Positions 3,528 to 49,163 of a stretch of 51,522 nt of DNA are shown here, in pieces. The stretch is from Octopus bimaculoides (taxonomy: Eukaryota), in the NCBI RefSeq assembly GCF_001194135.2, contig NC_068997.1, positions 5,993,472 to 6,044,993 on the forward strand, given 5' to 3'. The translations under genes and the position numbers were made by a program. Numbering within the stretch: the stretch's first letter is position 1; every line of letters begins with the position of its first letter. Under the pieces are notes generated by a model that did not search any database, had not been told where the DNA came from, and saw only the letters and a list, made by a program, of their open reading frames with translations.

Positions 3528-3794
3528 GTAGTATATTATGTTTGCATAACGAACTACCACGTATCCATAAACCATTAATATTAACTAAAATGTTTAAATG
3601 GCTGACAAAATACCTCGCCTAAGTTAGTGTTTTTTTCCTTCCATGGTCGATTAATTTTAAATACCAAATGCATAGGTCGATTTGATCAACTAGCCCTTGC
3701 AACGAAATGTGTGGCTTTGTAGTTAAGTCTGAAATCACTACTTAAATTGTAATTGTTTAGTGATTCATACTAATAGTAATATTAATCCTTTCTA

Positions 3795-4225: not shown

Positions 4226-4228
<3 letters not shown>
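3795..4228 (-). mobile_element. Two tandem tRNA-derived SINEs (family A, Octopus-type)
   Basis: Core ttttatcgac(c/t)ccgaaaggatgaaaggcaaagtcgacctcggcggaatttgaactcagaac with a B-box-like GAGTTCAAATTCC on the sense strand. Other copies lie at ~11780, 13895-14460, 30480-30925, 35130-35660, 38745, 45090, 47690-48385 and 50235-50545. Confidence 0.85.

Positions 4229-4298
<70 letters not shown>
4228..4298. repeat. (AAT)n microsatellite
   Basis: Read directly. Other long tracts: (CT)n 7561-7612, (CA)n 9365-9428, (ATC)n 38152-38190 and (GA)n 51450-51522. Confidence 0.95.
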
Positions 4299-10629: not shown

Positions 10630-11591
10630 TACGTTTTGGTCGCATTCCTGGCATTCTTGGTCGCGTTCTTGCTGGTGTCTCCAGCGTGGAAACAATATTA
10701 TCGATAATGGCACGAAATTACGTTTGACATCAGAGCCGATAACTGTGTGTGTATGTATGTGTGTGTGAGTGTGTGTGTGTGTGTATGCATAGATGCATGC
10801 GCGTGTGTTAAGAACATATAAGGATGGCAATGAAGGAGACAGTGAAAGAGTCTATAGCCATCGAAGTGAGAAGTTCATAGACACAAGAAAGATATATCAG
10901 TTCGTAGTCAATAGCACACGGTAAGTGAAAAACTGTATCAAGACGTCGCGGTCATGATGCTGAGCCAGTTACAGGTACATCTCGTACGTGAAGCCGTGGC
11001 TATGATGCTTGTACAAGAGTTCATGCAGGTTGTATATTCGCTGTTGATCCGTGGTGAAATAATTCACGAACAGTGAACTGTTGGAACCTGGGTGAATTGC
11101 TTGCTGAGCTGTGTACGTAGAGGGATGATATTGACGATGTTAAAAAGGACATGATGGTGGCGACGAAGAAGGAAGTTACCGTAATTATGTTGAACAAAGT
11201 TGGTCTCAACGTGGCTGCTGTGGTAGTGGTGGTGGTGTCGTCTGGCGTTGTCGCTGGAACTGGCTGTGTCTTTGTGGTCAGTGGCTAAACCTTAAAAGGT
11301 TCGGAACCAAAGTCCTCGGGACGAGGAAAAGCTGAGTTTTTTTTATAAGGAGCCGTAGGCTAAAGCAGGGTTGTAAACAGGCTGTCCTACGTGATCCTAT
11401 TTAGAGCCTCCGACTGTTTAAACGCGGCAGTTGGTGCAATCGAGTAAGAGACAAATTGCGCCAATACCAATCAGAGTAGTGGACACAACGGGATCTAAAT
11501 AGCAGCCAAAGGCTAGCTGTTCCCTGCTACGTTGGAATGCATGAATATATAATAAATGGGAGAGAGGAATTTCACCAGAGTCTATGCTACA
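10630..11591 (-). mobile_element. Diverged solo LTR related to 7550-8588
   Basis: Shares the block gcgccaataccaatcagagt(a/g)gtggacac. The right end GCTACA reads TGTAGC on the minus strand. The left boundary is uncertain. Confidence 0.6.
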
Positions 11592-13062
11592 GAGGGTTAG
11601 TTTGGATAATGCAGTCAGGGAAAATGAATGAAATGGTCATGGTTTGAATGTCTTTCCTCAAGGTTGACCCAAGATTAAACAACAACAATAGCTTATCCGA
11701 GCATTAAACTGTTTGTTACGAGCAAAATAACGAATGTCATTTCATTTTGCTGATTAGTAATAATATATACGAATGGGCTCAGTCGAATACACCGACCATT
11801 GTATTTGATTCATACTCGATTTTATCGATCTCCGAAGTACAAAAGGCAAAACTGACTACGGCATGATTTGAACCCGGAACACAAAGAACCAGAATATATT
11901 CCGCAAAACATTTATGTTAAGCGTGCTAAGGTCTCTGCCAGCTGACTGTCTCACTGCTATTTATTAATTCGGCCAATCATCGACTAGTTTGTATTAAAAA
12001 TTCTGATGACTAAATGTACTGGCTGCATCGATAGAACATAGGATAAAGTACCTGGTGTTATTTATTCTAGCTCACTGCAATCTGAGTTCAAATTTCATCG
12101 ACATCAATTTCACTTTTAATTCTTTCGTAGATGGAGGTTGATAAATAAAGTATTCATTAAATACTGGGACGAATATTCTCTCTCTTTCCAGGAACCGACG
12201 ACATTGCTCCGCGGAAAGGGTCGCTGGAGATAGCTTATAACGTTTTTTTCTTCAGAAATGGTGACAAATTGAGCGAGGCGGTGTAGTAAAATTTTCTCGT
12301 AGAAAAACTGAAATAAAGAAAGAAAATGTGCATGATTTATATGGATCACTTAATACGCATGTTGTTTAACCCCTGCTCAAACCTGATTGATCAAAGACAT
12401 TCCAGCCATGACCATCCAGTCTTTTTCCGATGTGAAAGTAATCCAGGACAATTTAATGTGTCTGTTTTTGGAAGATATGTTGAAATTTGAGGGAGATTTG
12501 GCAGCATTTTCTAGCAAGTCGAGTGACCACATAGAGGCGCTTTTGTTGACTCGAGTCATTCTTATCTCGTGTCAAGGGTGTACTCTGTCTGACCAATCAA
12601 AATCCTTAACAGTTGAACCAACATGATACACATCATACGGTAGAGGTAGTAGTAGCGACTGGCGATACGACAGCTGGTGCTTGAAGAAAGAGAGGAAGGG
12701 AGGAAAGGAAAACTTTTATAAACAATCGGCAAAGCAAAACACCGCCCCCTCTGTCTTCCTTACTAACCACCCTTATCTTGTAATTAACAAGTTTTGTGAA
12801 TCAACGACTTACAGTGGCTCTCTGTGTAATATAATTTAGTTCTAGTCAGTTTCTTTTGCCTACTTGTGTCCAATCCACGTTGACAAACCCCACCCCTATT
12901 CTATATACAATCTTGTTTGTGGGTCACACGACTTTTTTGTTTGCTGTTTTTTGTCAGTCGATTCAACCACCTGTAGTCGTTTTCTTTTTTACTAGCGAGT
13001 GCAGAAACTCTGCTAATTTTTCCGTCCTAAACCACAAAAAATTTACAAACCCACAAGAAGCC

Positions 13063-13223
13063 ATGAGTTTGGACACAGACTGTATGACTTTAACGAGGTT
13101 CGTTTTAGCAGAACAGAAAAAATATCCTGATGCGAAAGGAGATCTGACACAGTTGCTAAATGCTATCCTAACGGCAGTGAAAGCTGTCTCGTGTGCTGTG
13201 AGGAAAGCGGGGATACATAAATT
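13063..13223 (+). CDS. FBP1: Fructose-1,6-bisphosphatase, alternative first coding exon 1a
   Basis: GAAGCC-ATG at 13063 starts [54 protein letters not shown], a typical FBPase N-terminus. A phase-2 donor (TT|GTACGT at 13224) is compatible with exon 2 (AG|A TTT GGT). Confidence 0.92.
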
Positions 13224-14714
13224 GTACGTAATTATAAATTTTATCTGGTAACCCTTAAGTTTTGCTGATTAAAACTTAAAGACAATAAGTTCATATGTAA
13301 AAACATACGTTGTTGAAATGTGAACTGGTTAATATTTTTGATTAAATTATGTATAGATTATTTAAAATAACTTTGTTTATCGAACGATCGAGAAAAACTT
13401 TAAGGAAAAGTATCTCTAGTTTTCTTTAGTTTTTTGTCGTTAAAGAAAACCGTTTTTAGTCATAGGGGCCACGAAGTACTTTTTCTTTTATATTCAACAT
13501 GCTAAACTTAAGCCCACGAAATACATTTTTGAGAGAGTTTTACTTTCCTTGTTTTATCCAACAGCAGCATCAACCGCGTTAGTTTTAAGACTGTAACTAC
13601 GCTCTCAAATTTTAGTTAGAATGTGACTCGTTATTTTAATATTACCCATGGTATTGATGTATAAGATTTTTTTCCCCTTCCTGTTATGTACTTTTCTCTC
13701 GTTCATATTCATCGAAATAAGGAAGTATAATTGTCAAGAGAAATTAAATCCTGCTTTACAATGCTATCCCAAGGGAGAAAAGAAGAAAGACACGTAACAA
13801 GTCTTTTGAACTTTAATCATAAACTCAATTTTCTGTAAATATCATATTTGTCTGACATTTTGTGGTTTCTGCGAACCAATGATGATAATAATAATCCTTT
13901 CCACTATAGCACAAAGCCTGAATTTTTTTGGGGGAGGGGAACAATCGATTAAGTCGACACTAGCACGCAACTGGTACTTAATTTATCGACTCCGAAAGGA
14001 TGAAAGGCAAAGTCAACCTCGGTAGAATTTGTACTCAAAACAGTGGCAGACGAAATACTAAGCATTTCGTCCGGCGTGCTAACGATTCAACCAGCTCGCC
14101 GCCTTGACGATGATAAGAACAATAATTCTGTCTACTATTAGCAAAAGGGCTGGAATTTTGGGGGATGGGGTAAGTTGATTATATCGACCTCCAGTGCTTG
14201 ACTGGTACTTTTTTCATCGACTCCGAAAGGATGAAAAGCAAAGTCGACCTAAGCGGAATTGAACTCAAAACATTGACTGACGCAATATCTCTAAGCATTT
14301 TTTTCGGTGTGCTAACGTATCTTAATAATAATAATAATTATTTCTAATTTTGACACAAGGCCAGTACTTGACATGTACTTTGATTTATCGACTCCGGAGG
14401 GATGAATGACTCTGCTAATCTAGGCTGGATTTGAACTCAGAATTAAAGAACTGGAGCAAATATCGTATGGGACCCTGATCAGATCTTTTTTACTATTACT
14501 GGCGATGTTGTGTTTCTTAGTACCGGATCTTTGGGTATATTTACGCTACATACTGTTTATTTCATCTCCTGGTAGATCAACACAGTTGATCTCTCTTACT
14601 TGCATTGTCGTCTTCATCTGCCGACTGAAAAGAATATTTTTGTATACAAACATGCACACATTATTGTTGTTTAGCGTTAGACCAACCCTGGTCGAACAAC
14701 CCTATAATCTAAAG

Positions 14715-14958
14715 CACTGGTTCTCAACCATTTTTTTTTTTTTTTTACCTCTGGACTCCTTTAATTCCTATTTTACTTCACTGAACCCCCGTAACCATTT
14801 AATGTTTAAAACATCCAATTAAATCTTTATAACTAAATATTATTTGGAATCGTATTAAAAAAAATGCTAAAATGTTGTCTTGAAGTATAACCAAATTATT
14901 GCATATAAATTTTAACAATATCCCCAAGGCTCATGTGGACCCCAGTTGAGAACCACTG
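14715..14958. mobile_element. hAT/Charlie-like MITE
   Basis: TIRs CACTGGTTCTCAAC and GTTGAGAACCACTG; degenerate 8-bp TSD ATCTAAAG/GTCTAAGG. Partial copies lie at ~16255-16455 and ~36715-36919. Confidence 0.75.
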
Positions 14959-16564
14959 GTCTAAGGCATTCCAACCGTGNNNNNNNNNNNNNNNNNNNNN
15001 NNNNNNNNNNNNNNNNNNNNNNNNNNNNNNNNNNNNNNNNNNNNNNNNNNNNNNNNNNNNNNNNNNNNNNNNNNNNNNNNNNNNNNNNNNNNNNNNNNNN
15101 NNNNNNNNNNNNNNNNNNNNNNNNNNNNNNNNNNNNNNNNNNNNNNNNNNNNNNNNNNNNNNNNNNNNNNNNNNNNNNNNNNNNNNNNNNNNNNNNNNNN
15201 NNNNNNNNNNNNNNNNNNNNNNNNNNNNNNNNNNNNNNNNNNNNNNNNNNNNNNNNNNNNNNNNNNNNNNNNNNNNNNNNNNNNNNNNNAACCCTATCCC
15301 CGACCCGCGTGTGCAAATGAATACGTGTTTAGGGTTAGGATCGACCACTCACGACTAGCTAGCGCGGACGCGCGACTGCGCGTTCGGGACCGTGCTGCTT
15401 TAGTAGTACCCACATTATTGTTGTGTGTGTGTCAACCCTGACCGAGCAACCCTATGGTCTAAAGCATTCCAGCCGTGGCCATCAAAAGATTGCTCGATCC
15501 CGTCTTTCCTTTAAGAGTACAGTATGTAAGGGCTTCATTGTCTTAAGACAGCAAGGTGTTATCTGGAGAAGATTTGGCTCTATATCTAGCATGTCGAGCG
15601 AACACGAAGCGGCTTTTCGATGGCTCATCGCACACACACACCTTCTCAAACGCACATATACACGCACGCACACACACTGATTGTTAAATCAAGCCTTGCA
15701 GACCTGCGTGGCTGGTGTTGTAACTTCGTTAACTTTGTGGTGTCATAGAAAATTGGGATTCTGGATTTACGTTTGCAACAAACACCTTTGTTGACATTGT
15801 CACACATGTTTCGATACATACCAGTTGACACCTCTCACTCACGGTACAAGAGAGCGTAGGGTTGGTCGCTTGGCAAGCTAGAAATGGTAACCAAACCTAC
15901 CTCAAATCAAACCTCTTCGTTTTGGGATAGCCCGCTTAATTTTTTTCTCTAGTTTAAAGCTGCCGCCACCACTACCACCTGGTCCTTTTGATGCATTCAG
16001 GTGAGGTCTTCGATCAAAGAGTGACATCCTCCTCCAATCCACCCAGCAGTCTCGTAGCTCATAAAAAGGGTCATCAATGCTTCCTTGGTTAAGTCACTGA
16101 GCAAAATACACAAAAGGGGTAACATACGGTAGATAATGTAGTCCTAAATACTCCCCAAAGGACGTAAAGGCTACGGATGAGATTATTTTGATCATAGGTC
16201 TGCTTGATCATAGTTTACCTGGGGTTATATTGAACCACAAGAGATCCTCTAAACCAGTGGTTCTCAACCATTATTTTTTCCTATAAACCCCCTTGATTCC
16301 TATTTTACTCGGGTGGACCCCCTTAACCATTCGATGTTTAAAAAATCCTGTTATATTTTTATAATTAGATATTAGGAATTGTATAAAGAATTGTTGAAAT
16401 ATTTTGTCTATTGTAGACGTAGAACTAATTTATTGCACATAAATTCTAACAACAAAATTGGTTAATGCTTACAACTTGACCCGGAAACGAAGATCAGAAA
16501 CAAATAGTACTACAGGTGTAAAAAAAAAAAAAATGTGTTGGAATCGAATATGAAAAGAAAAAAA

Positions 16565-17234
16565 AATGCGCGCAAAGCAACGGGAGGGTGGGAAGAGGAC
16601 CTCGCAAAATTCACAAGATCCGAGTTTTTCCCTCATAGCTTTTAGGAAAATGGGTTTTTTTTTTCAATGAAATTTTACATAAATACCTTTCAAACGGCAT
16701 ACATTACGATTATAAACTAACTTGTGAGGAAAATCTTGAGATGGGGAGAGGACTTTCGGAAAATTCCCAAGGTCAGGATTTTTTCTCGTTATATTCCGAA
16801 ATCACATTCAACTTTCTACAGATACCCTAAGCGTAATACTACTATACTATGTAGTGTATATTTCTACCCACTTCCAATAATTTTTAATGTTTTGGCTTCA
16901 ATTCGGTTTCATTTTATCTTCAGTTATTTTTACGCTTTATTCTCATTCACTCGTTATTACTTNNNNNNNNNNTCTATGTAAAATTTCATTGAAAAAACCC
17001 CCATTTTCCTAAAAGTTATGGGGGAAAACTCGGATCTTGTGAATTTTCCGAAATCCTCTCCCCACCCTCTTGGAAAAGATTTTCTCCACAAATTTCTTTA
17101 TAATCGTGATGTATGCCGTTTGAAAGGTATCTATGTAAAATTTCATTGAAAAAACCCCCATTTTCCTAAAAGTTATGGGGGAAAACTCGGATCTTGTGAA
17201 TTTTCCGAGGTTCTCTCGTTGCTTTGCGTGCATT
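16565..17234. mobile_element. Foldback-like element with internally repeated inverted arms
   Basis: TIRs AATGCGCGCAAAGCAACGGGAG and CTCTCGTTGCTTTGCGTGCATT. A 157-bp unit is tandemly repeated (16973, 17130) and inverted at ~16590-16760. Confidence 0.7.
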
Positions 17235-18215
17235 AACCATTTATATAGACACCCGAAGGTCATATAAGACCTTATGATTTGAAGCGTTCCAACCATACCC
17301 TTCCGATCAATTTCTCAGGTACAGCACTCCTAAGACCACATTTACTAATGGTAGGCTGTGATTTTTTAAAGATTTAACTAGTATTTTTAATAAAAAGTGC
17401 TATAATACTTTATAATACTGCTCTAAATGGTCGCTCACCCGACTAGAAATAGGAACCAAACTTTCCTCAAATTACACTCTGCCATCTTGAAAAACTGGAA
17501 GTGTTCATTGAGCAATGTTGACATAAATATAAAAAAAGGTAGGATTGTCACGGTTGGAAAGCTTTTTATCATCGCCCTGCTCGATGGGACTAAACGACAA
17601 CAACAATCGATTGAAATAATGCACCCATATGCGTAACATATTCCTTCTATCAACCGTAGATCGATGAAGGATGAATCAAACTGAATAATAATTGTTGTTA
17701 TTGTTGTTGATGTTGTTTTTAGCCCCAGGTTTTCTTAAACGAGAAGACTCTATGATCAAAAGCAATCCAGTGGTGATCATTCCGCCTTTTGAATGTTCAT
17801 TTTCTATATTTTTCAAAAAATTATAAGAGTCAGTATCTAACAGCTAACTATTCCTACCTCGATGCTTCGTTGTTTAGCCCCAGGTCAGCTCTTATGATTT
17901 AAAGCATTCCAACCATGCCCTTCCGGTCAATTTCCCAGGCACAGCACGCCTAGGACCACAGCAATCCATGTTAACTCAGAGGCGTTCCATCCGTGATTAA
18001 ACAATCTTTTTTTTTATATCCAACATTGAGATTCTTCAGTGTGTTCTTTTTTTTCTTCTGTTAAGACCAAAGGATGTTATTTCTAGCAGACCGAGCGACC
18101 ACTAGATATCTTTTATCGTTGTCTCGTGTTCTAATTCTTAATCGCTGTAACATAGCAGCATATTTTATAAGCGTGAAGGAACCATATATAACATGGTTTT
18201 ATATATATTGCACTA

Positions 18216-18416
18216 CAGTAATCCCTCGATTATCGCGGGTGTTACCTTCCAAAACACCCCGTGATAGGTGAAAATCCGCGAAGTAGAAATAGTACTGTAC
18301 TGTATATTTTTTGTTATTGTTTTTATAATTTGTATATATTCATTTTATTATAAATGCATCACAGAGGAATGGACGTAAGGTTAAATAATAAACCGCGATA
18401 TGGTGAGAGATTACTG
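18216..18416. mobile_element. pogo/Tigger-like MITE
   Basis: TA|CAGTAATCCCTCGATTATCGCGG ... CCGCGATATGGTGAGAGATTACTG|TG, i.e. TIRs with a TA-type target. Confidence 0.75.
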
Positions 18417-18437
18417 TGTTATAAATATGTGTGCGAG

Positions 18438-18590
18438 TGGCTGTGTGGTAAGTAGCTTGCTTACCAGCCACATGGTTCCGGGTTCAGTCCCACTGCGTAG
18501 CACCTTGGGCAAGTGTCTACTATAGCCTCGGGCCGACCAAAGCCTTGTGAGTGGATTTGGTAGACGGAAGCTGAAAGAAGCTCGTCGTAT
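18438..18590 (+). mobile_element. tRNA-derived SINE (family B)
   Basis: gtggctgtgtggtaagtagcttgc...ggttccgggttcagtccc...gagtggatttggtagacggaa. Other copies lie at ~10465, 23480-23790, 24755, 25605, 27085-27425 and 39430. Confidence 0.8.
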
Positions 18591-19061
18591 ATATATATAT
18601 ATATATATATGTCTGTGTTTGTCGCCCCCCCCCCTCCANNNNNNNNNNNNNNNNNNNNNNNNNNNNNNNNNNNNNNNNNNNNNNNNNNNNNNNNNNNNNN
18701 NNNNNNNNNNNNNNNNNNNNNNNNNNNNNNNNNNNNNNNNNNNNNNNNNNNNNNNNNNNNNNNNNNNNNNNNNNNNNNNNNNNNNNNNNNNNNNNNNNNN
18801 NNNNNNNNNNNNNNNNNNNNNNNNNNNNNNNNNNNNNNNNNNNNNNNNNNNNNNNNNNNNNNNNNNNNNNNNNNNNNNNNNNNNNNNNNNNNNNNNNNNN
18901 NNNNNNNNNNNNNNNNNNNNNNNNNNNNNNNNNNNNNNNNNNNNNNNNNNNNNNNNNNNNNNNNNNNNNNNNNNNNNNNNNNNNNNNNNNNNNNNNNNNN
19001 NNNNNNNNNNNNNNNNNNNNNNNNNNNNNNNNNNNNNNNNNNNNNNNNNNNNNNNNNNNNN

Positions 19062-20002
19062 ATGACCAGTAATGAAAGACCACAACCGTATAAGATGAAT
19101 AACAGAAATATTTATTCTGGCATTAAAGTGTATGTCTGTGTGAGAGTGTGAATGCGACATATAAGAACATAATCAAAGACAGGCCGTCATACAAAGAAAA
19201 GTATGTATGTGAGTGATACATGTATGTTTATGTGAGATATTACAGCAGATAGAAAGAGAGTCAGTAACCGTGAGCATTTATACCAGTTCCTGAGTACACA
19301 TTAGTATGAGTCTGTATGTGAAGGGAGTTGAGGCTGTGTGTGGCACTGCTGATCACTAGTTGTGATGTGGTGGCTTCCATGCCGGGCCGTGATTCTTGTT
19401 ATGCAGATGTTCGTCTCTTGTCTGTTTATTTATCGTGGTGAAGCTGAGTCACCTAACAGAATCGAAGAGAGAGATGTGCCGCGGTGGTTTAGTTTGGTGT
19501 ACATAGAAAGTCGTGTAGACGCTGGTGGAGATTGATGCTGGTTAGTAGTAATCGTAGAATCGTGTTGGTCATGACGATGATGCTGGTTAGTAGTCGTAGA
19601 CTCGTGTTGCTGATGTGGCGGCGTAGTTGGTGGTCATTGTTGGACGAAGCTGTTGATGTGTCGCTGGCTGCCGCTGCTGTTGCTGTCGTGTGGTACACGG
19701 AACAGATCTCAAAGAGAACTGAACCGAGACAAATTTGATGGGTATGAGTTGCTCTATTTAAAGGGTTAAGGGGGCTCCAAGACCGTAGTAGAAAAACACT
19801 ATCACGTGACCTTATTAAGGGCTGTGATTGGTCAGTTTGCGTTCTGGCGGGAACGGTTCGAAGAAGTTGCCGCTTCGAATATTAATCAGTCACGTGATGA
19901 CAAGGAGATGGGTTCTCCGCTACGCCCGCGCTTGTTTATATTTAAATGAGAAGAATGGCGATAGCAGTTTTGTATCTAATGGCGATAGGTAGTTTCACTA
20001 CA
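19062..20002 (-). mobile_element. Third related solo LTR, running into an assembly gap
   Basis: 19070-19260 matches the reverse complement of the 3' part of the 7550 LTR (gtgcgacata...agacaggcc.tcat). It ends CACTACA, which reads TGTAGTG on the minus strand. Confidence 0.55.
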
Positions 20003-21534
20003 TATATATAATGTTTGTATGGCTACAACGCAAGTATGTATGTTTGTCTCCCCCCTCTTTCTCTCTCTCTCTGTATATATATGTATATATATAAGTGAGT
20101 TTGGAGGGATATAATATCCGAGCGGATACCGTATTAGCTCTCAGTTCAGATCTAGTTAACGGCTATATTAATAATAATAATAAAGAGTATGGAGACTTGT
20201 ACATCCACAGAATTTATTTTGTAGTTATATACAACATAATGGCCTACACGTGTTTCCGTTGCAGCGACTACTCACTGTTGCAAATGCAGCCTTGCAATAT
20301 TGTCGGTACGGCTTCATCAGGGTCCATCCATTTGGTCATCCTCGAAGTGAACTGATTGAAGTAAATTTTTGCTAGTAAGTGTTCTGTGGGGCTGGGAGTG
20401 TTGTTATTTAGGTATTATTTGATTCTTTCACCCGCACGATTTTCACTAAGAAAAAATAATTAAAAAAACCCCAAAAGACTCGGAATTTTTGTGTGGAATC
20501 AAGTACCCTGACCTACTAATATGCTGCAAACTCTTTACTTTTGTTCGGAGAAAAAGGGGGTGGGTGAGTATCAGATCCCCCCCCATATCCCGGAATCATT
20601 GGAAATAAAATTTTTTTTTTTTTCGTTGAATGAATTCCGGTGACCTAATATGCTGCAAAACTCTTTTTTGGGTCCGGAAAACGGAGTGGGGCGAGGTGGA
20701 AGCCTCGGAATTTATTTATAAGTATGTGCTGTTGACCTCAGCTTCACCCCAGTCAACTTTTTTCAATTAGAGGCAAAAACAATAGCTATTTTATCGATTG
20801 GGAACAAATTAGTACTGCTAAGCCTTATCGAGTAGGAGTAATAAAGAGTATGGAGACTTGTACATCCACAAAATTTATTTTATAGTTATATGCAGCATAT
20901 TATAATGACCTACACGTATTTCCGCTGCAGCGAGCGACTACTCACTGTTGCAAACGCAATTTTGCAATAGTGTCGGTGCCGCTTCATCAGAGTCCGTCGA
21001 TTTGGTCACCCTCGAAATGAGCCGACTGAAGTAAATTTTTGCTAGTTATTGTTTGCCGGAGGTGGGAATGTTGTTATTTATAAGTATATGCTATTGACCT
21101 CAACTTCACCCCAAGTCGCAGTCCGAAGTTAGGAATTGGTCTAAAATATGTTAAGGTCGAGATTATTGCTTTTGTAAAGCTCTTTGTTTCTTTTAACGAT
21201 TGTGTCGTGCTTATGTTGAAGGCTTCATGTATGTTTATATTCATTTTGGGGTTGGGCTGCTCATAATTTGTGCTATACGTTGGATAAGGCATATGTTTTG
21301 TTTGATTTTAGTAATGATGGTTATTAAATATTTTTATGTTTAGGTTATGTTATTCTCTTTGTTATATCAAGCTCAATTGTTTCTGGGGCGTTCGTGTAAA
21401 CATCTCAGTGCTTGTTCGTGTCTTGTATTAATTAATGTGTTTTGATGTAAATATTTGGTAAAGTTATTCTACGCACATGTCGAGGATCGAATCCACGCTA
21501 TACCTACATGAAGTCACTACATACTGTATCCGGC

Positions 21535-22201
21535 ATACTTCCACATGTGTGCACCCCGTCCTGACTTTGTTGCCTCATAATTTCCGATATTTTTTCAATG
21601 AAATATTCTACAAATACGCTTCAGATGGTAGAGATTTCGATTATGTCGGAATATGTTCAAAACTTTTTTCCAAGGGTTGGGTGAGGAGTTTCGAAAAATT
21701 CTCATGAGTCTGATTGGTTTCCTCAAAAGTTTCGAAAAAATGGGTATTTTCGTATGAAATTTTCTCCAATTATGAATCAGTATGTGTAAATTACTATTAT
21801 ATCGGAATTTGATATGGAAAAGGAAACTGGTGAGCACACACATACACACACGCACACATACACTCGCTCGCTCGCGCACTAACGCACACCACAGTTTTGC
21901 TTTCGAAATTTCTAGTTTTATTTTGTAGATATATATGATGTATGTCAGTATGTATGTGCACGAGTTCACCAATTTTGTTTTTCATATTAAATTCCGATAT
22001 AATCGTAATCCATGCTCTGGAAGATATTTATAGAAAATTTCATTAAAAATACGTAAAGAAATTTTTTTACGACAAATTCTGGTATAATCGGAACCTACAC
22101 CATCTGAAGAGTATTTGTTGAAAATTTCATACAAAAATATCCATATTTCTGGAAGTTCTGAGGCAACAAAATTGGTGAAGGGGTACACATGTGGAGGCAT
22201 G
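21535..22201. mobile_element. Foldback/MITE with long imperfect inverted arms
   Basis: CATACTTCCACATGTGTGCACCC versus GGGTACACATGTGGAGGCATG, with further inverted matches (cttcagatggt/accatctgaag, ttgttgcctca/tgaggcaacaa). Confidence 0.7.
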
Positions 22202-25200
22202 CTACGTTTCTAATATGTCGTCCTTGTCTTTGTTTAAGATAGTAAGGTGTGATTTAATGGAAATTTGACTGTTGTGTCTAGTAAAAAGCTAACGGCTACG
22301 TGAGAGTCTTCTTCAATGTCAGCCGTTTAAAGTGGTTTGATACCTTTAATTTAAGATTTCTTATCGATATTCGTCAGCCAGACGTTCTCACCAGTTTATA
22401 AACAGATAAACACATTAACTGACTAGCAATTCTCATAAATATTCCAGGCAGCACACTTATTAAGTCATTACTAACATACTTAATGTCGTGATCTAAGAAA
22501 TGTTAATTAATTGAAATTTACGCTCGTAGTAACGAAAAGAAAGAATAATAAAGTTAATGATTCTGGTCACTACTGGGTGTCAAAGAAAAAAACAGCCAAC
22601 TCTGACATTTTAATTAAAACGAAGTCTCCGATTAGGACAATCGCCCTAGCGACTCCATTTGTGTCTCTTTTTAAGGATCTAAAAGTCTACATTAGATTCA
22701 TCTCTTCCACTTTTTCAAGATATTAGGGTGTAGTTTGAGAAAGATTTAGCTGTTATTTTTAGTGTAAGGCTCCTTCACTGTGCCTATCAGGTTAATAGAG
22801 GTCAATAGTATCCTATTTCACGTTATCAGAAAAGCATATCGTTTTATCAGAAGTTTCTAAATGTGTTGTAGTTGTTATTGTTGCTGTTATAGTGGATATT
22901 TAAAGCAAATCATGCTGAATTTTTACTGTATTTTACGTTTTTAGATAATTTTTCTCATATTGTTTTTTTATTTTTACATTAAATGCTTTTTCTTACTTTT
23001 CCTATCCCTACTCTCTCTCATCTCCCACTCTTACGTCACTAACTCTCTCTCACCACCACGACTACCACCTCTCACTATTCTCTCTTACTCCACCCTATCT
23101 CACCTACCCTTTCTTACCTTTCTTTCATGCTCACTCTCTTATCTCATTCTCTCACCCCACTCACGCTGATCTTACTGTCTCTCCCACACTCTTTTACTTT
23201 ATCTCATCCTCATCCTCTCTCGCTCTACTCTCTATCACTCACACTCTCTCACCCTCATTCTCTCACCCTTGTGTCCCTGTTCCTTTTTTAAAAATACCAT
23301 TAAATCTCACATATGTAATACAATGATCAACTGAAATTATTCAAGCCATTAATAAACAAAACCTCCCTATTGTGGTGTTTAAAATCTAAAGTCCAGTAAG
23401 GAAGATAACTCCAATCAGCTCAGTTAATTGAATTGTTGATCAATATAAAACAATGTAGATTCTTTTATCTTTTACTTGTTTCAGTCATTAGACTGCGGCC
23501 ATGCTGGGGCACCGCCTTGAAGAATTTATCGACCCCAGTACTTATTATTTTTTTAAAGCCCAGTACTTATTCTATCGTCGTATTTTGCTGAATCGCTAAG
23601 TTGCGGGGGCGTAAACACACCAACACCGGTCGTCAATCGTTGGTGGGGGACAAATATATACACATACACATGACGGGCTTCTTTCAGTTTTCATCTACCA
23701 AATCTACTCACAAGGCTTTGATCAGCCTGAGGCTATAGTCGAAGGCACTTGTCCAATGTGCCACGCAATAGGACCGAACCTGGAACCGTGTGAATGGAAG
23801 ACAAACCTCCTACCACACAGGAAAGATTGAGAGAAAACCTCGGTCATGTTTCGATTTTATTAGACCTCATTATATTCTCTACTCAGTTGATAACATTGAC
23901 AAGTGTTTATCTTATTACTTGCTGGAGGAAGGGACAGTGCCCATATCCTTTGTAACCCCCTCCCCCGACACTGATGAGCTTGCTGCTGCTAATATTTCTC
24001 TTGAACCATTAATAGATACTCGTAGAGAGGGAGTTCCAGATGGCTGGTGTTCAGGAAAGGAAGGACAAGACATACTAGTTACTGCGGGGCCTGGCGAGTG
24101 GGTGGGGGAGTTCGGACACATCAAGGGTGATGTAACAAAGAGAGACGCTGGAACGGAAATACCTGAGCAGATGTGACATAATCGTAGCTAGTTCCGAGGA
24201 GCAGAGACCATTATGGTAGTAGTAGAAAGAACAGAGAGAAGAGACAGTGTACTTATGGGCCAGAGGTGGGAATATGTCTGTAAGTGATTTTGTGCCATTT
24301 AGTCGGGAGGCCATCTTTTCATGTGCTTTACACTTCACACAAAAAATATATCGCTCGGATTTTCTGGATTTTCAGTTACGCGAACACTTTACATTACACT
24401 ACGTTGTAATTGATTACTACGTGGACTGATAGCCAAGTCCGTTAGAGGAGCTTACTATGATAGTCGCATGATTTTCTGAATCCATATTTTATACTACTCA
24501 TGTATGTATGTATGTATGTATGTATCTGTTGTGTATGTATGTATGTATCTGTTGTGTATGTATGTATGTATGTATGTTTCGGCCAGCTAAATCATCATCG
24601 GACAGTCCGACGATTGCTTAGCTGGCCGAAACTTCGAAGTCACTATCAACAACATTCTTGTATAAGAATAATAAATTTGTACTTTATAAAAGTATAGAGT
24701 AATCCATCAGATTTTATGATAACTGAGCATAAAAACAAATACATACATACATACACATGAAAGGCTTCCATACAGTTTCCATCTGCCACATTCACGCACA
24801 AAGCATTGGTCGGCCCAGGGCTGAAGTAGAAAACATTTGCGTAAGGTGTCACCCAGTGTAACTGAACTCGAAACTACATAGTGGTAAAGGAATTTACCAA
24901 ATGATGAGGTCAAATATTTCAATGATGAGGTCAAGCAACACTCAAAGATGTCCATTACTCCAGTCAGTATTTACCAAATTTGTCAATTAAATGATCTCAT
25001 CGTGTTTATCTTTTCTCAGTGTTTTTAGATTTTGAAACACCCCTAGAAGGAGTTTTTATCTTCTCATTGTCTAGATAATCTTAATCGGTCGAAGTTTTCC
25101 CCTTATTACATTATTTTGCCTACAGAACTCTTTCTTGAGGTAGTTGTTCTCAGCCCCATGTTGCTGACCGAAAGAAAGCAAAATGAAGTTCACTTGATAA

Positions 25201-25918
25201 TCTCAAGAAGCTAACGAAATAATCCCTAGCAGTTTACCAGGTGAATCATATTACACGTTACAATTCCAAGGGAGACGATCATTGCGATTCCGTGATAACT
25301 GGTCCATGAAGGTCGTCTCCCTTGCAAATTTGAACTTTTGAACTTGTATTTATAAGTATCATGTCAGCCCCCCACCATCTTGATTAACGAACCAATTTTT
25401 TAAAACTCTGGTCTAAGAAATTTTGCTATCTGATGATAAACGATTTTTATGCAGATAAGTACTTCGTGAGTACTGAAATATAAACTAATATAAAATACAA
25501 TAGACCTACAATGCTCCTATATCGAAAAATAAATTCTATTGAAAAACTTCCTTTGAATAAAATTATATATAATTCAATCAGATAATAAATAAAGCGGAGC
25601 AGGCTTGGCTGTGTGGTAATGAAGCTCGTTTTGCAATTACAAGGTCTCCGGTTCATTCTCATTTCATGGTACTTTGGGCTAATGTCTTGTATCTCCTGGC
25701 TGACCCATACCTCCCATGAACTTAGTAGACGGAAACTGTGTAGAGAACCGTTGTGTGTGTGTAGAAATGTGTGTGTGCAATTCGGCCTAAGACACCGATA
25801 GAATAAGTGCTAGGCTTACAAAGAATAAGTCTTGGGGTCGATTTGTTCGACTAAAACCTTTCAAACAAATAAAAGAATATATATATATATCATTTGTGTC
25901 CAGACACAATAAAGTATG

Positions 25919-26741
25919 GGATCTTTGTGATTTGACGGGCAACATTTTTTTTTTGTAGTGTTTTTGGTACCGAAACACTTTCAAACTTCGAATACTTGTA
26001 TATTTTGTGTTATAGAACAGATAAAAAATTTTGTATTCTAAGTTATTTCATGTAAAAAAATTGTCGTATTTCGGTAATTTCAACCAATCACTGACGTCTA
26101 TTGAGGTGAAAACAATTATGCCGTGGAATGTAAACAACGGTGTTACGGGATTTTTTCCCTTGAATAAAATNNNNNNNNNNNNNNNNNNNNNNNNNNNNNN
26201 NNNNNNNNNNNNNNNNNNNNNNNNNNNNNNNNNNNNNNNNNNNNNNNNNNNNNNNNNNNNNNNNNNNNNNNNNNNNNNNNNNNNNNNNNNNNNNNNNNNN
26301 NNNNNNNNNNNNNNNNNNNNNNNNNNNNNNNNNNNNNNNNNNNNNNNNNNNNNNNNNNNNNNNNNNNNNNNNNNNNNNNNNNNNNNNNNNNNNNNNNNNN
26401 NNNNATAACCATAACCCTAACCCCAACCCTAACCCCAATCCTAACCCTAAAACCCGAACCCTAAAACCCTAAACCCTTACTAGGGAATAATGATATAATT
26501 AAACAGGGAATAACACACTTGACACCGAACAGCACTAACTGTATTCAGCTGAATAGACGTCAGTGATTGGTTGAAATTACAGAAATACGACAACTTTAAC
26601 ATGAAATAACTTGCGATGTACAATTTTTTGTTAAGAAGGTTAAGAGAAGAAATTGTTTTATATGACACATTCTACCAGTGTCCCAAGTTTGAAAGTGTTT
26701 CGTTAAGAAAACAAGTGTTGCCCGTCAAATCACAAAGATCC
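25919..26741. mobile_element. Long-TIR element with a telomere-like core
   Basis: GGATCTTTGTGATTTGACGGGCAACA and TGTTGCCCGTCAAATCACAAAGATCC at the ends, with ~200-bp inverted arms. Degenerate (TAACCC)n at 26405-26478 lies next to a gap. Confidence 0.72.
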
Positions 26742-29484
26742 AAAATATGCTTCAACACACGAATTCACATAATCTTGCAAATCAAATAAAAAAACGAAAT
26801 GTGTGTGTGTGTGTGTAAGAGAGGGAAAGGGAGATAGCCAATGTACTTCTTTAAAAAAATTCAGTTTGTTTTTTAACGATATCGTAGTTTGTGTTGTACA
26901 TTTATATCTTCTATTACCACGGGTTGTTTCGAGATTTCATCGTCACAATTTGTCAAACATACACATTAAAATTAAGTCAAGTTGGATAGGATTCATTGCG
27001 TTATACGTAATTAAGATTGAGTATGTGCTTGAGTGTCAAAGTGTGTGTGTGTGTGTTTATCTTTTTTTTTTTTTTACTTCTGTCAGTCATAGAACTGCGG
27101 CCATGCTGTGGCACGCCTTGAAGAGTTGTTAGTGGAACAAATCGATCTTGTACTTATTCTATCGGTTCACTTTACTGAACCACCAGGTTACGAGGACGTA
27201 AATAAACCAACACTGGTTGTCAATCGATGTGGGGATGGGAGAGGGGCAGATACACACACACACACACAATGGGCTTCTACACCGTTTCTCTATAAAATTC
27301 ACTCACAAAGTTTTTGTTGGCCCAGGGCTATAGTACAGAACATTTACCCAAGGTGCTGCACAGTGGGACCGAACCTGAAATCACGTGGTTGCATAGCGAG
27401 TTTCTTAATCACACAACCACGCCTGCACCTGCATCATGCATATATGGATGGCTGGCTGACTGACCTGAAGAGGTCAGAGATGTGTGACGATAGTGCGTGT
27501 GTTCATTTGGCAAAAAAAAAAAAAAAAAATGACTGTCCCGAAATATAACGATTTCTGTTTCAACATACGCTTTCACATCAGGAATCTTGCAAAACAAATT
27601 CATATACGTAACGATGTGATGAAATACTTATCGTTTTGAATAGCAAAGTATTCCAGTATTGTTATTTTAAAGTAGATTAAGGACTCGTAAGTATAGTTAT
27701 TATTACATCGTGTTGAATTATTGACTATATTTACTATGAAGCGGATTTTAGTCCTCAAGCTAGGAATGTACGACACAGAACACTTTGATATTTAACATGT
27801 ACTGTATAGTATTTTATCATTTTTAATAGTTGCAGTCGTTCAACTACGGTTATGCTGGGGGGGGGGTCCCTTTTAATAGTTCCTTACTCGATCGTATCGA
27901 CCCCAGGATTTCTTTCAGTTTCTTGTTTGTTTTATCGAAGAAGAAAAGGACAAAACAAAAGAAAAATTCCCGAAATATTGAAAACAAAATATGAAATTCT
28001 TGATATGACTGTTTAATTATGGTAATGTTGAGATATCAAAAGATTTAGTTTAAAAGCAGAAAAATAAAAAGGAAAGGAAAATCCGCGAGACTACAAAAAC
28101 AGCTGTGTGGTTTGTGCGAGTTAGTACAATGTTTAATGATGATCCGGTATTCATTGACAATAAACCAGGAAATATTAGACGTAGTAACTTATGTTAGGAG
28201 TGACATATCCTGGTAGTTAGTGTTTCAATTAACAAAAGAAAAAAAAAAGGATTGGTGGGTACAGACTGTTCATATCCTTTTCACACAAAGTCTTGAGGAA
28301 AAAAAGCAGTAAACAGGTTGGGAGAAGACGGAATGATAAAACAACAAGGAGGATAGTATTGATATCGATGTATAGGTTCGATCCTACCTCGTTATAGATT
28401 GGACCCGTTTTCTACTGCCAAATAACTGAATCAATGGGGACTCAACATGAACAACACCGGTTTTAGACATGTATAAACATTGACTCATTCGTGCGCACAC
28501 GCACGTACATTCACACACACACACACACACACACACAGAGCGCCTGATAGGTTGCTTAACGGTGAGTTCAAATATCGCCGAGGTCAATTTTGCCTTCCAT
28601 TCTTTTAAGGATTAACAAATAAACTACTAGTCATTCACTGGAGTATCTTGCTTCTCTTTTCCTTTCCATCTGTCTGTCTGTCTTCTAGAAGAAATCGGCT
28701 GAAGTCAGACCTGTAGAGTAATGGGCTCCTCTAGGTCAAAATATACTCAAGATAATACTGTATGCCATCTTGGCGCCTCTATGACTCCATCCAGGAGTCG
28801 AAGGCAAATATATAAATACGACAGCCTTTTGCATAGTTTCCGTCTCCAAAATTCGTCTCGCAAAGTATGTATATTACCTATGGTGCCAAAATGTTAACGG
28901 AAGCAGAGACAACAAATTCAATGATCATGAAAATAACTCGTGGTATTTCTTCATCCCGAGTCACATACAATCGCCCTTGTTACTATCGCTGGATCCCCGT
29001 CGGTTTCGACGATGACGACCTACTTGTGTGATCCACTGAATTACCTGCACATGAATTAACATGTATGTGGTTGAGTATTCTGAAGACACAAAAAGCCATA
29101 AAGTAATTTTCTGGCAGAATCAGCGTGACAGTGTGATGTATGACAAAGCTGTACTTTTTGAATTACAGAACACAAATCACCCAACCGATTGCTATATACT
29201 TTCCGTCTACTCAATTCATTCACAAAGTATGAATCGATCCGTGATTTTTCAAAATGATATTTGCTCAAGAAACCACGTAGTGGTATCGAACCTGGCCCTC
29301 GTGGTTGTGAAGCGATCTTTTTAACCTTTTCAATATACCGCACCTATATTCACAAAAATGCATATGGAAAGAGAAGGGGAAAAACACCAACAACTTTGAA
29401 AGATATTTATTATTGTAATGTGAATAGAATTCTAATGGAAGATATATTACAGAAATAGCTGGAAAGTTGCTTAGCGGTTGTCAG

Positions 29485-29557
29485 TGAAGGTGAAGGTCAT
29501 TTCTTGTTTGTCAAGATAAAGGTCGTTCAGTGACCAGTTTAATCTAAGTGAAGGTCG
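29485..29557 (+). promoter_or_regulatory. Cluster of nuclear-receptor extended half-sites upstream of exon 1b
   Basis: TGAAGGTGAAGGTCA (29485-99), TAAAGGTCG (29517-25) and TGAAGGTCG (29549-57), plus GATA motif AGATAA (29514-19). Motif match only. Confidence 0.3.
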
Positions 29558-29929
29558 TTAAACTACCCAAACTTCTTTTGTTCATGACAGCAATCACTCC
29601 ATCTCATTTATGTTATATTTCTCTCCTCCCACTCCTCTAGTCATCTTGTACTTTTACTTTTCGCTCTCTGCTACTTTCGCATTCTTCCCCCCCCCCATCT
29701 CTCTATTTTTAACGCTTCTCCCCTCTGTCTGTCTTTCTATTTCTTCCTCTTCTTCTCTGTCTCCTCCTCGTCATCTCGTCCTCCCTGTCTTCCTCTCTCT
29801 GTCTCTTTCAATCTTTATTCCTCACCACTCCGTCATTATCTTACTGTCTCTTCCTCGCGTCATTCGCACCCTTCCTCATCTCCCTCTTTCTCTTCCATTT
29901 CTTCTCCTCTTAACACACACACTCACGCA

Positions 29930-29936
29930 TATAAAT
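29930..29936 (+). promoter_or_regulatory. Candidate TATA box of the exon 1b promoter
   Basis: TATAAAT 47 nt upstream of the 1b ATG, downstream of a ~300 nt CT-rich tract. Confidence 0.4.
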
Positions 29937-29976
29937 TCGCACGTATACACCACATCTGTCTCTGAGTCCAGGCACC

Positions 29977-30131
29977 ATGGAGACTGATTACATGACCTTG
30001 ACACGTTTCTTACTCACCGAAGAGAAGAAACATCCTCATGCAACGGGAGTTCTAACCCAGTTAATCAATTCGATTCTTACTTCAATCAAGGCCATTTCTG
30101 CTGCCGTTCGCAGAGCGGGTCTTCGAGATTT
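29977..30131 (+). CDS. FBP1: Fructose-1,6-bisphosphatase, alternative first coding exon 1b
   Basis: Kozak-like GCACC-ATG-G starts [52 protein letters not shown] with no stops. The consensus phase-2 donor TT|GTAAGT is at 30132. The exon is under 60 aa, so it is absent from the ORF track. Confidence 0.92.
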
Positions 30132-31402
30132 GTAAGTTTATTTTTCATCTCAAAAAGTTCTTAAAACTATCCACATATACACACACTGCGCACACAGATA
30201 TGTATATATGCATGCATGTATGTATACGCACACACACATACACACTAAAAGTGTTTTCTTTAAACGCAGAAAAAAAAAGGGTTACTAGCTGGTGGAGTGT
30301 GGCTAGGGAGATTTGGCTGTTATTTCTAAAAGGACGAGTACTACTGGAAAAGTTCCCCTGTTAACAAGTATTGACCCCGTGGAATGAAGAGTTAAACAAG
30401 GTCCTGATGAAGACCAAAAAATGATAGTTATAGAATATTAAATTAACGTCTCAATAATATCTTATTAATATTGGTTTCATATTTTGGCATCAGGTCAGCA
30501 CTTTTGTGGGAGGATTAAGTCGGTTACATCGACTTCAATGCTCAACTTGTACTTATTTTATCGACCCCGAAAGGAAGAAAGGCAAAGTTGACCTCGACGG
30601 AATTTGAATTCAGAACATAAAGAGTGACGAAATATCGCTTGGCATTTTGCCCAGCGTACCAACGATTCTACTAGCTTATCACTTTGTCATCAAATTAATA
30701 AAAATTGATAGTTAAGGCGGCGAGCTGGCAGAGTCGTTACGATGTCGGGCGAATGCTTAGAAGCATTCCGTCCGTCTTTGTATTCTAAGTTCGAATAACA
30801 CGGCAGTCAACTTTGCCTTTCGTCCTTTCAGAGTCGATAAAATAAGTACCAGTTAAGCACTGGAGTCGGTCGGTGTAACCGACTTAATTCTCCCCTAAAA
30901 GTGCTGACTTTGTACCAAAATTTTAAACCAATATTAAGATATTGAGATGTTAATTGAATATTCTATAATTATAATTGTTTTGTCTTCATCAGGAGATTGT
31001 TTAACTCTTCATTCTCACAAGGTGGGAACCTTCCCAGTAGCACTCGTCCTTTTAGAAATAATAACCTAATCTTCCTTACCACACTGCACCGTCTTAGGTA
31101 AAAACGATGAAAATATTGAACAATGTAGTCCAGAATATACTATTAGTTATGACTAGAACATATTTGATCATAGATCTGCTCTATTAGGCTACTAATAAAA
31201 TAAAGAAGCCCTAAAGTAGTACTCGGTTGATTTATATCCATATAATGCAACCAAGTTGCGAATGGAATTACAGTGCTGGATGGCTTAAAAGACGCATGAG
31301 CATATTAGATGCACCCTAATTTCAGGACAAAGTTTTTAGTGCATCAAATCTTATAGGAGGCCCAGCTTTGAAAATAGGATCCAGAGAGAGGCTTTTTTGG
31401 AG

Positions 31403-34599: not shown

Positions 34600-34762
34600 A
34601 TTTGGTGTTGCTGGTGGTTCCAATGTGTCTGGAGATGAGGTCAAGAAGTTGGACATTCTGTCCAATGACCTTTTCATCAACATGCTCAAATCTTCGTTCA
34701 CGACCGCCCTGATGGTTAGTGAAGAGAATGAGAAAGCTATTGAGGTTGAAATCGAAAACCAA
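34600..34762 (+). CDS. FBP1: FBPase exon 2
   Basis: Acceptor TTTCAG|A; encodes [54 protein letters not shown]; donor GTGAGG; 163 nt. Confidence 0.96.
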
Positions 34763-37094: not shown

Positions 37095-37187
37095 GGAAAA
37101 TATATCGTCTGCTTTGATCCTTTGGATGGTTCTTCAAATATTGATTGTTTGGTTTCTATAGGATCCATTTTTGGAATTTATCGAAAG
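37095..37187 (+). CDS. FBP1: FBPase exon 3 (metal-binding FDPLDGS motif)
   Basis: Acceptor TTCTAG|; encodes [31 protein letters not shown]; donor GTGAGT; 93 nt. Confidence 0.97.
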
Positions 37188-39020: not shown

Positions 39021-39161
39021 TTGTCTTCAGGCCCTGCTACTGAGAAAGATGCCCTGCAACCTGGCCGAGACTTGGTTGCCGGTGGATATGCCCTTTATGG
39101 CAGTGCTACTATGGTTGTTCTATCCACTGGTCAAGAGGTAAATGGATTCATGTTGGACCCT
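39021..39161 (+). CDS. FBP1: FBPase exon 4
   Basis: Acceptor ATCCAG|; encodes [47 protein letters not shown]; donor GTAAGT; 141 nt. Confidence 0.96.
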
Positions 39162-41432: not shown

Positions 41433-41570
41433 TCAATTGGAGAATTTCTCCTAACTGAAAGGAATATGAAAATTAAGCCACGAGGAAAAATCTATTCCCT
41501 CAATGAAGGTTATGCTCAGTATTGGGACAAGGCTACCTCAGAGTATATAAAGAGCAAGAAGTATCCTAAG
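41433..41570 (+). CDS. FBP1: FBPase exon 5
   Basis: Acceptor TGGCAG|; encodes SIGEFLLTERNMKIKPRGKIYSLNEGYAQYWDKATSEYIKSKKYPK; donor GTAAGG; 138 nt. Confidence 0.96.
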
Positions 41571-43155: not shown

Positions 43156-43272
43156 GAGGGAAAACCCTATGGTGCCCGCTACATTGGTTCCATGGTTGCT
43201 GATGTACACCGAACCTTGTGCTATGGAGGGATCTTCATGTACCCTGCCACATCACAGACTCCTAACGGAAAG
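43156..43272 (+). CDS. FBP1: FBPase exon 6
   Basis: Acceptor TGTCAG|; encodes [39 protein letters not shown]; donor GTTTGT; 117 nt. Confidence 0.96.
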
Positions 43273-44683: not shown

Positions 44684-44875
44684 CTCCGACTATTGTACGA
44701 GTGCAACCCCATGTCTTTTATCATTGAGAAAGCTGGTGGTTTAGCTACCACAGGAACCATGCCCATTCTTGATGTTGTTCCTACAAGCCTTCACCAAAGA
44801 GTTCCTATCTTTTTGGGATCGAAAGATGATGTTCAAGAGGTTATAGAACTCTACAAACTTCATGGAACTAATTAA
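44684..44875 (+). CDS. FBP1: FBPase exon 7 (terminal coding exon)
   Basis: Acceptor TTCCAG|; encodes [63 protein letters not shown] then TAA. The joined CDS is 1005 nt with 1a or 999 nt with 1b, both in frame. Confidence 0.97.

Positions 44876-49129: not shown

Positions 49130-49163
<34 letters not shown>

Follow-up and report, generated by a model that had tools for sequence, protein, structure and literature searches.

The window examined here is a stretch of 51,522 nucleotides (nt) on the forward strand of NC_068997.1 in Octopus bimaculoides (5,993,472-6,044,993, GCF_001194135.2; coordinates below are positions in this window). It contains the gene for fructose-1,6-bisphosphatase (FBPase, an enzyme of gluconeogenesis), which is very probably a single gene of seven coding exons whose exon 1 is present twice in tandem. 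The two copies, exons 1a and 1b, are homologous exons on the same strand with no other exon of the FBPase gene between them, and each supplies a different N-terminus to the protein encoded by the shared exons 2-7.

Gene model and its products

Both first exons can be read directly from the DNA. Exon 1a has an ATG at 13063, an open frame and the donor GTACGT after TT, and exon 1b has an ATG at 29977 in the context CACCATGG, an open frame and the donor GTAAGT, likewise after TT. Because their coding parts of 161 and 155 nt each leave a remainder of 2 on division by three, both donors are of phase 2, and translation confirms that 1a and 1b each join in frame to exon 2, whose acceptor TTTCAG precedes the A at 34600. 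An earlier reading made from the sequence alone (the sequence-only reading) had proposed this arrangement, and exon reading and translation bear it out. Its count by hand of 32 identities in 52 positions is matched by the alignment, where the two peptides are identical at 31/49 positions of an ungapped block and at 32/52 if the count also takes in the split Leu codon and two N-terminal positions; its spacing of 16.8 kb holds as the distance from the 1a donor to the 1b ATG, the two ATGs being 16,914 nt apart.

The similarity of 1a and 1b is beyond chance, since each exon-1 peptide alone passes the gathering score of the Pfam FBPase family PF00316 (44.5 and 35.9 bits, cut-off 34.8) and both first exons are matched in tblastn by a human FBP1 probe (1e-13 and 4e-11), which served only to locate exons. 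The assembled 1a form has 334 amino acids and is 100% identical to XP_014769931.1, the RefSeq 'fructose-1,6-bisphosphatase 1 isoform X1', and the 1b form has 332 amino acids and is identical to XP_014769932.1, isoform X2. For PF00316, X1 reaches 256.3 bits and X2 247.6 bits, and for FBPase_C (PF18913) both reach 170.7 bits, all above the gathering scores; in both isoforms the two profiles are covered from 1 to 190 of 191 and from 1 to 126 of 127 positions, respectively. The match to the rabbit, human and pig FBPase structures has E = 1e-149 with residues 2-330 aligned, and many FBPases of solved structure share about 65% identity with the octopus protein. The full-length domains and the DPLDGSSN motif identify both predicted products as class I fructose-1,6-bisphosphatases.

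No second set of exons 2-7 was found anywhere in the window by tblastn with a full-length FBPase probe at E values up to 50, and no further FBPase-like coding sequence was found in the window by tblastn, including the 16.8 kb between 1a and 1b. Among the best 120 protein matches listed, the window is the single class-I FBPase locus of O. bimaculoides.

Conservation of the locus

The same layout is seen in four orthologous loci, all without N, from O. sinensis (L001), O. vulgaris (L002), Argonauta hians (L003) and Sepia pharaonis (L020). In the first three, tblastn recovers the order 1a, 1b and one set of exons 2-7, with an intact 1b situated 15.5-15.7 kb 3' of 1a in O. sinensis and O. vulgaris and 6.6 kb 3' of it in A. 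hians, and no additional FBPase exon was found by tblastn in the equivalent gap-free intervals of these three species. In S. pharaonis the order is again 1a, 1b, exons 2-7, with 1b located 21.9 kb downstream of 1a and exon 2 a further 20 kb away. The window itself is collinear with the gap-free O. vulgaris locus from 5' of exon 1a to past exon 7, and the flanks of every assembly gap map onto that locus in order and orientation (blastn). Four of the gaps lie inside the 1a-1b intron and therefore leave the reading frame unaffected.

As a side observation, the start codon of exon 1a has turned over (13063-13071, compared with L002 10001). O. vulgaris, O. sinensis and Argonauta start with ATG-GA(C/A), giving MDTD... 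or MESD..., and O. bimaculoides has TTG at that ancestral start codon and a new ATG two codons upstream (MSLDTD...).

Age of the duplication and selection

In a neighbour-joining tree of exon-1 peptides that included nine outgroup lophotrochozoan species, the 1b copies from Octopus, Argonauta and Sepia cluster together as a clade (bootstrap 0.93), which points to a single duplication before the octopod-decapod split, dated at about 250-300 million years ago. The duplication is thus old, as the sequence-only reading had supposed, being common to the three genera, and the ATG, the length of 155 nt and the GTAAGT donor of 1b are kept in five genomes (O. bimaculoides, O. sinensis, O. vulgaris, Argonauta and Sepia pharaonis). 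A profile search with five 1b peptides found only cuttlefish 1b (P0251, genomic-type contigs) and no 1b-type exon in squids, Nautilus or non-cephalopods.

Selection was assessed on a codon alignment of 49 codons from six genomes or transcriptomes. The ratio of the proportions of non-synonymous and synonymous differences (pN/pS) is 0.12-0.19 in orthologue pairs of both copies, with Fisher p values from 4e-7 to 6e-21. For 1b, O. bimaculoides and Argonauta differ at 11.5 of 109.7 non-synonymous and 30.5 of 37.3 synonymous sites (Fisher p = 3e-15), and for 1a the ratio of the corresponding substitution rates (dN/dS) in this pair is 0.09. In comparisons of 1a with 1b, dN amounts to 0.17-0.29, and saturation has been reached at synonymous sites. 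The purifying selection on both copies that had been read from the conservative changes is therefore found when the ratios are calculated, none of which is near 1, and both copies have been retained under purifying selection since before the octopod-decapod divergence. Separately, pS between O. bimaculoides and Argonauta is 0.82 in 1b (29977-30131 against L003 16560-16714) and 0.45 in 1a of the same gene; the higher value in 1b may reflect the small sample, or local mutation, codon-usage or gene-conversion effects.

Transcripts and the choice of first exon

Transcript evidence was taken from full-length contigs of cuttlefish Logan RNA-seq assemblies, in which the species of run SRR23936173 is Sepia esculenta (PMC10442824). 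The 1a form of S. esculenta (P0244) occurs in 54 index blocks, and the 1b form occurs in two runs from different projects, as P0248 (SRR25158154) and P0250 (SRR8281674), so that 1a appears to be the major form in the cuttlefish assemblies (54 index blocks against two contigs for 1b). The contigs L014 (1a) and L009 (1b) share every base of the final 836 nt of coding sequence and of 396 nt of 3' untranslated region (3'UTR) and diverge at the exon 1/2 junction; placed on the S. pharaonis genome, each begins at its own first exon and then follows the same six exons. One gene thus makes both mRNAs, since each has its own first exon, followed by six shared exons that are 100% identical. Exactly one first-exon copy is present in every transcript contig or annotated isoform examined, these being few and none of the transcripts coming from O. 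bimaculoides, and a transcript with both copies would be frameshifted because both lengths are 2 modulo 3. With a short query of 1a plus exon 2, a protein search gave nothing but short fragments; none was a cephalopod transcript spanning the junction, and the search was uninformative.

Since both copies are first exons that bring their own ATG, and transcripts with one lack the other, the choice between 1a and 1b would be made at transcription initiation, from two promoters. Candidate elements are present at both exons (Table 1). Upstream of 1a, the CCAAT and a GTGGGTCACACGA block are conserved in O. bimaculoides, O. vulgaris and Argonauta in an alignment of the upstream regions. Upstream of 1b, the TATAAAT is identical in O. 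vulgaris, and in S. pharaonis and S. esculenta the 1b ATG is preceded by TATATAAAT at a distance of about 25 nt. We infer a promoter role for the motifs at both exons from these sequences.

The S. esculenta 1b leader (L009 1-548, L021 114-233) also contains an upstream in-frame ATG that would add 40 residues (P0250, 369 amino acids, beginning MKVICFRVTF), an extension that has no counterpart in Octopus.

Table 1. Coordinates of the FBPase gene, its candidate promoter elements and the assembly gaps in the window; the last row refers to the Lingula anatina locus
Feature	Position	Strand	Description
Candidate promoter elements 5' of 1a	12870..12931	+	CCAAT ~12870-12874, TATATA 12902-12907, conserved block TTTGTGGGTCACACGA 12916-12931
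Exon 1a, coding part	13063..13223	+	161 nt, 53 codons + 2 nt; canonical-type N-terminus; isoform X1
Interval 1a-1b	13224..29976	+	intron for 1a transcripts, upstream region for 1b
N runs in 1a-1b intron	14980-15289, 16963-16972, 18639-19061, 26171-26404		none touches an exon
TATA-like TATAAAT	29930..29936	+	47 nt upstream of 1b ATG; candidate core promoter of X2
Exon 1b, coding part	29977..30131	+	155 nt, 51 codons + 2 nt; divergent N-terminus; isoform X2
Fifth N run	33565-33593		intron between 1b and exon 2
Shared exon 2	34600..34762	+	163 nt; tblastn and splice-site inspection
Shared exon 3	37095..37187	+	93 nt; GKY (Lys112/Tyr113 of AMP site) and DPLDGSSN metal-binding motif
Shared exon 4	39021..39161	+	141 nt; splice-site inspection
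Shared exon 5	41433..41570	+	138 nt; splice-site inspection
Shared exon 6	43156..43272	+	117 nt; splice-site inspection
Shared exon 7, coding part	44684..44875	+	TAA stop at 44873-44875
Lingula L031 (LFEI02000252.1)	1A 10001-10183, 1B 10998-11177, 6a ~13151-13270, 6b ~13681-13800		four RefSeq isoforms

N-terminal differences and their probable bearing on regulation by AMP

Each first exon encodes residues ~1-55 in mammalian numbering, obtained by alignment to rabbit liver FBPase 1bk4, and thus helices α1 and α2 together with the first part of the hinge that leads to catalytic loop 52-72. Seven positions are fixed differently in 1a and 1b across coleoids (Table 2), of which 27 and 29 lie in the loop that holds the phosphate of adenosine monophosphate (AMP), 50 and 53-55 lie at the hinge between helix α2 and the catalytic loop, and 46 is the remaining one. 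Judged against the outgroups, 1a is near the ancestral molluscan sequence except for the change of Thr27 to Lys, and 1b is derived at most positions, with Asp29 changed to Val or Ile, Lys50 to Arg, Ile53 to Leu and residue 55 to Asp. A decapodiform transcript (P0127) has a 1a-type N-terminus with the ancestral Thr27 and Asp29.

Table 2. Residues fixed differently in exons 1a and 1b across coleoids
Position	1a	1b	Outgroups
27	Lys	Thr	Thr
29	Asp	Val/Ile	Asp
46	Ser/Cys	Ala	Ser/Thr
50	Lys	Arg	Lys
53	Ile	Leu	Ile
54	His	Lys/Gln/Arg	Ala/His/Ser
55	Lys/Asn/Gln	Asp	variable

In mammalian FBPase, AMP is contacted by Val17, Thr27, Glu29, Leu30, Thr31, Lys112 and Tyr113 (PMC3785478), where its phosphate is held by the Thr27 side chain and by the main chains of residues 27, 29 and 30 (PMC3785478; PMC4822563). 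Both octopus isoforms have Leu30, Thr31, Lys112 and Tyr113, and they part at the other contacts, with Val17, Lys27 and Asp29 in 1a and Leu17, Thr27 and Val29 in 1b. It has been shown that single substitutions in this part of the protein shift the AMP concentration for half-maximal inhibition (I0.5) by 22-fold for K20E, 19-fold for Q32R and 50-fold for A54L (PMC3785478; PMC4822563), and that contacts between Arg22 and Thr27 underlie AMP cooperativity (PMC3785478). Because the fixed differences fall in the phosphate loop and at the hinge of loop 52-72, the two isozymes would have identical catalytic bodies and a different allosteric response to AMP, and altered AMP regulation is most likely the functional consequence of the 1a/1b differences. 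Tissue-specific isozymes, mixed tetramers and an altered AMP response, as envisaged in the sequence-only reading, are plausible.

Weighing the alternatives

Several points weigh against the interpretation developed above. The RefSeq isoforms X1 and X2 are predicted models, and the transcript contigs examined come from S. esculenta. The genome may carry another, divergent FBPase gene outside this locus, only the best 120 protein matches having been listed. The effect of Val29 is not predictable from the sequence because AMP touches residue 29 only via its main chain (PMC4822563). The TATA-like motif 5' of 1b cannot be aligned in Argonauta; in S. esculenta, the 1b contigs reach beyond the TATA-like motif and follow the genome collinearly for at least 548 nt upstream of the ATG. 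Because of this long collinear extension, the contigs do not fix the transcription start site of 1b, and part of it may be unspliced pre-mRNA.

The upstream extension bears on the origin of 1b transcripts. Two independent S. esculenta 1b contigs carry from 233 to at least 548 nt of genome-collinear upstream sequence through the TATA-like motif, as would be expected if 1b had no adjacent promoter of its own and were reached from a distal start or leader, with the choice made at least partly by splicing. We regard this as distinctly unlikely. The 1a contigs likewise have a long collinear 5' extension (L010, 572 nt), and such assemblies tend to lengthen contigs with pre-mRNA reads, as the 1a extensions suggest; the TATAAA motif is kept between Octopus and Sepia; and 1b mRNAs without exon 1a must either start 3' of the 1a donor or skip the first exon, which splicing cannot do. 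Two promoters, one at each first exon, thus remain the preferred reading of the transcripts. That 1b might be a decaying or non-coding relic of the exon duplication, predicted but never made into protein, would fit the rarity of 1b-type full-length contigs in the cuttlefish assemblies, but is highly improbable given spliced 1b mRNAs in S. esculenta, the Kozak context CACCATGG in Octopus, a pN/pS of 0.13-0.19 for 1b at saturated synonymous sites, and an ATG, open frame, 155-nt length and GTAAGT donor that persist in five species spanning the octopod-decapod split. Hardest to credit is that 1a or 1b belongs to a separate FBPase paralogue, collapsed or mis-scaffolded here, with its exons 2-7 hidden inside gaps. 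Four N gaps of estimated length do separate 1a from 1b in the window, but every gap is spanned collinearly by O. vulgaris sequence, and the exons 2-7 and 3'UTR of cuttlefish 1a and 1b mRNAs are nucleotide-identical. A collapsed or misassembled paralogue as the source of 1a, raised in the sequence-only reading, is rejected by the four independent gap-free assemblies (O. sinensis, O. vulgaris, Argonauta hians and Sepia pharaonis), which agree on 1a, 1b and one exon 2-7 set, and downstream exons belonging to 1a alone were not found by tblastn; the claim of one gene is upheld.

What the two N-termini do is less firmly settled. It is rather unlikely, though well short of negligible, that they mainly alter partner binding, subcellular location or quaternary state and not AMP allostery. 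Such roles, namely aldolase binding and a 'leucine lock' of the R-state, have been put forward for the N-terminal part of muscle FBP2 in vertebrates: residues 8-18 of mammalian muscle FBPase form the leucine lock, which is remodelled between the R and T states (PMC4822563), an N-terminal role in the aldolase interaction is cited in PMC3785478 (its reference 39), and some of the 1a/1b differences do fall in helix α1, at positions 10, 17, 19 and 21. The coleoid-fixed differences, however, are at 27, 29, 46, 50 and 53-55, outside residues 8-18; both copies have Leu13, and the codon for position 190 is in a shared exon. Tuning by AMP, which we favour, and a role in partner binding or location are not mutually exclusive.

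Public annotation

The arrangement had been thought undescribed. This stands in so far as a full-text literature search on FBPase in connection with alternative first exons, cephalopods or duplication in invertebrates turned up no paper about it, and a literature search found no enzymology on cephalopod FBPase isoforms. It does not stand for the databases, where both forms are present as RefSeq X1 and X2, in the O. vulgaris annotation (CAI9735392.1, CAI9735393.1), which was built from Iso-Seq and RNA-seq transcript models (PMC10700109), and in that of Acanthosepion (Sepia) pharaonis (CAE1307538.1 and CAE1307539.1). The arrangement is thus already public in the form of gene models and apparently undiscussed, and the class of architecture to which it belongs is known.

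Comparison with known systems

Vertebrates have split a gluconeogenic FBP1 from a muscle, glyconeogenic FBP2 function by whole-gene duplication, and structural work has largely credited the regulatory difference between the two to the N-terminal AMP site and helices α1 and α2. The octopus resembles them in having two class-I FBPases per animal, as with liver FBP1 and muscle FBP2, and in having seven coding exons. The difference lies in how the pair arises, since in vertebrates the whole gene is duplicated and the proteins are 77% identical along their full length, whereas in cephalopods only exon 1 is duplicated and exons 2-7 are identical. The residues also differ. In vertebrates, whether residue 20 is Lys or Glu makes AMP sensitivity differ 22-fold between FBP1 and FBP2 (PMC3785478). 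Unlike this Lys/Glu split, position 20 is Glu in both cephalopod copies, whose differences lie at 27, 29, 46, 50 and 53-55.

Differently regulated tissue isozymes are made from one gene by the L and R first exons of PKLR, the liver and beta-cell first exons of glucokinase (GCK) and exons 9/10 of PKM. The first exons of PKLR and GCK are, however, not homologous duplicates of each other, and PKM swaps an internal exon by splicing, not by promoters. A closer parallel is found among genes in which tandemly duplicated 5' coding exons with alternative promoters yield homologous N-termini, an arrangement that is rare and unusually conserved (PMC8373072). UGT1A, the clustered protocadherins, PLEC and KCNAB1 (PMC8373072) share with the octopus gene tandem homologous ATG-bearing first exons, common downstream exons, deep conservation and purifying selection on both copies. 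In contrast to these, the octopus gene has two copies only, encodes a core metabolic enzyme and duplicates an allosteric nucleotide-binding module, and its promoters are candidates only.

Another example has been annotated in the brachiopod Lingula anatina, whose FBPase gene (RefSeq X1-X4, L031) carries a pair of ATG-bearing first exons in tandem, separated by 1 kb, with 75% identity and a common exon 2. As in cephalopod 1b, the second Lingula copy has Arg at position 50. The Lingula gene differs in being compact (5 kb), in also having a duplicated, mutually exclusive exon 6, and in retaining the ancestral Thr/Ser27 and Asp29 in both exon-1 copies. In the tree, the exon-1 copies of Lingula fall outside the cephalopod 1b group, so that the Lingula duplication is probably independent.

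Further isoform differences were noted at the protein level. In Babylonia areolata, X1 and X2 (P0132, P0134) differ by three residues, all in the exon-1 peptide (YVLEEQRKHPKATGD vs YVLQKQRKHPEATGD), which may reflect either a recent duplication of exon 1 or an artefact of assembly or haplotype. In the chiton Liolophura (P0328) and the nemerteans Lineus and Tubulanus (P0329, P0330), isoform X1 has an insert of 6-10 residues at the exon 2/3 junction after ...EKQ, which hints at an alternative donor, or a micro-exon, whose position is conserved.

Other features of the window

Exon 4 could begin at 39021 or at 39030, since two AG acceptors, separated by 9 nt, are both in frame; use of the second would delete Leu-Ser-Ser, and the annotated proteins start at 39021. 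Upstream of the FBPase gene lies a minus-strand retroelement fragment (5861-6753), in which the open reading frame (ORF) 5861-6370 matches the Pfam reverse transcriptase RVT_1 (E = 1.7e-12) and the adjoining ORF of 121 amino acids (6388-6753, minus) has no Pfam match. Downstream, a convergent neighbour on the minus strand (~46500-51522) has faint or weak Pfam matches to EGF_2, CUT_N and VERL_C. The same neighbour is found in O. sinensis, O. vulgaris and Argonauta, where synteny is conserved, and S. pharaonis has a Spatacsin_C gene instead.

Dispersed repeats occur at 18435-18627, ~3773-4272, 13879-14341, 30492-30705, 47704-48386 and 50226-50504, each matching several sites of the O. vulgaris locus; such multi-site matching is typical of interspersed elements, and the copy at 18435-18627 abuts the gap at 18639. 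There is also a tandem repeat at 1253-1606 (87-bp unit, 4.1 copies, 70% match), and microsatellites are located at 1047-1119 (ATG)n, 4229-4298 (TAA)n and 51447-51522 (GA)n. Rfam and tRNA scans found no RNA genes in the window.

Significance

Taken at its broadest, the finding may mean that lophotrochozoans have repeatedly duplicated the AMP-sensor exon of FBPase, once in the coleoid ancestor, independently in Lingula and possibly in Babylonia, and that 1b is physiologically distinct, with its own promoter and use in particular tissues or stages; we put this forward tentatively, as a conjecture that could well fail. If it is true, 1b, with Val/Ile29, Arg50, Leu53 and Asp55, would have a markedly altered AMP sensitivity or cooperativity, and the gene would represent a natural domain swap in which the N-terminal 55 residues suffice for an isozyme pair like FBP1 and FBP2. 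As a natural chimera, it would also be informative on FBPase allostery, since any kinetic difference between X1 and X2 would have to come from ~20 substitutions, of which seven are fixed and two lie in the AMP phosphate loop. The comparison with vertebrates also illustrates how lineages have arrived at isozymes convergently, one by duplicating an exon and another by duplicating a gene, and the brachiopod offers a parallel. For cephalopods themselves, expression studies that count 'FBPase' as one transcript merge two forms that are probably regulated differently.

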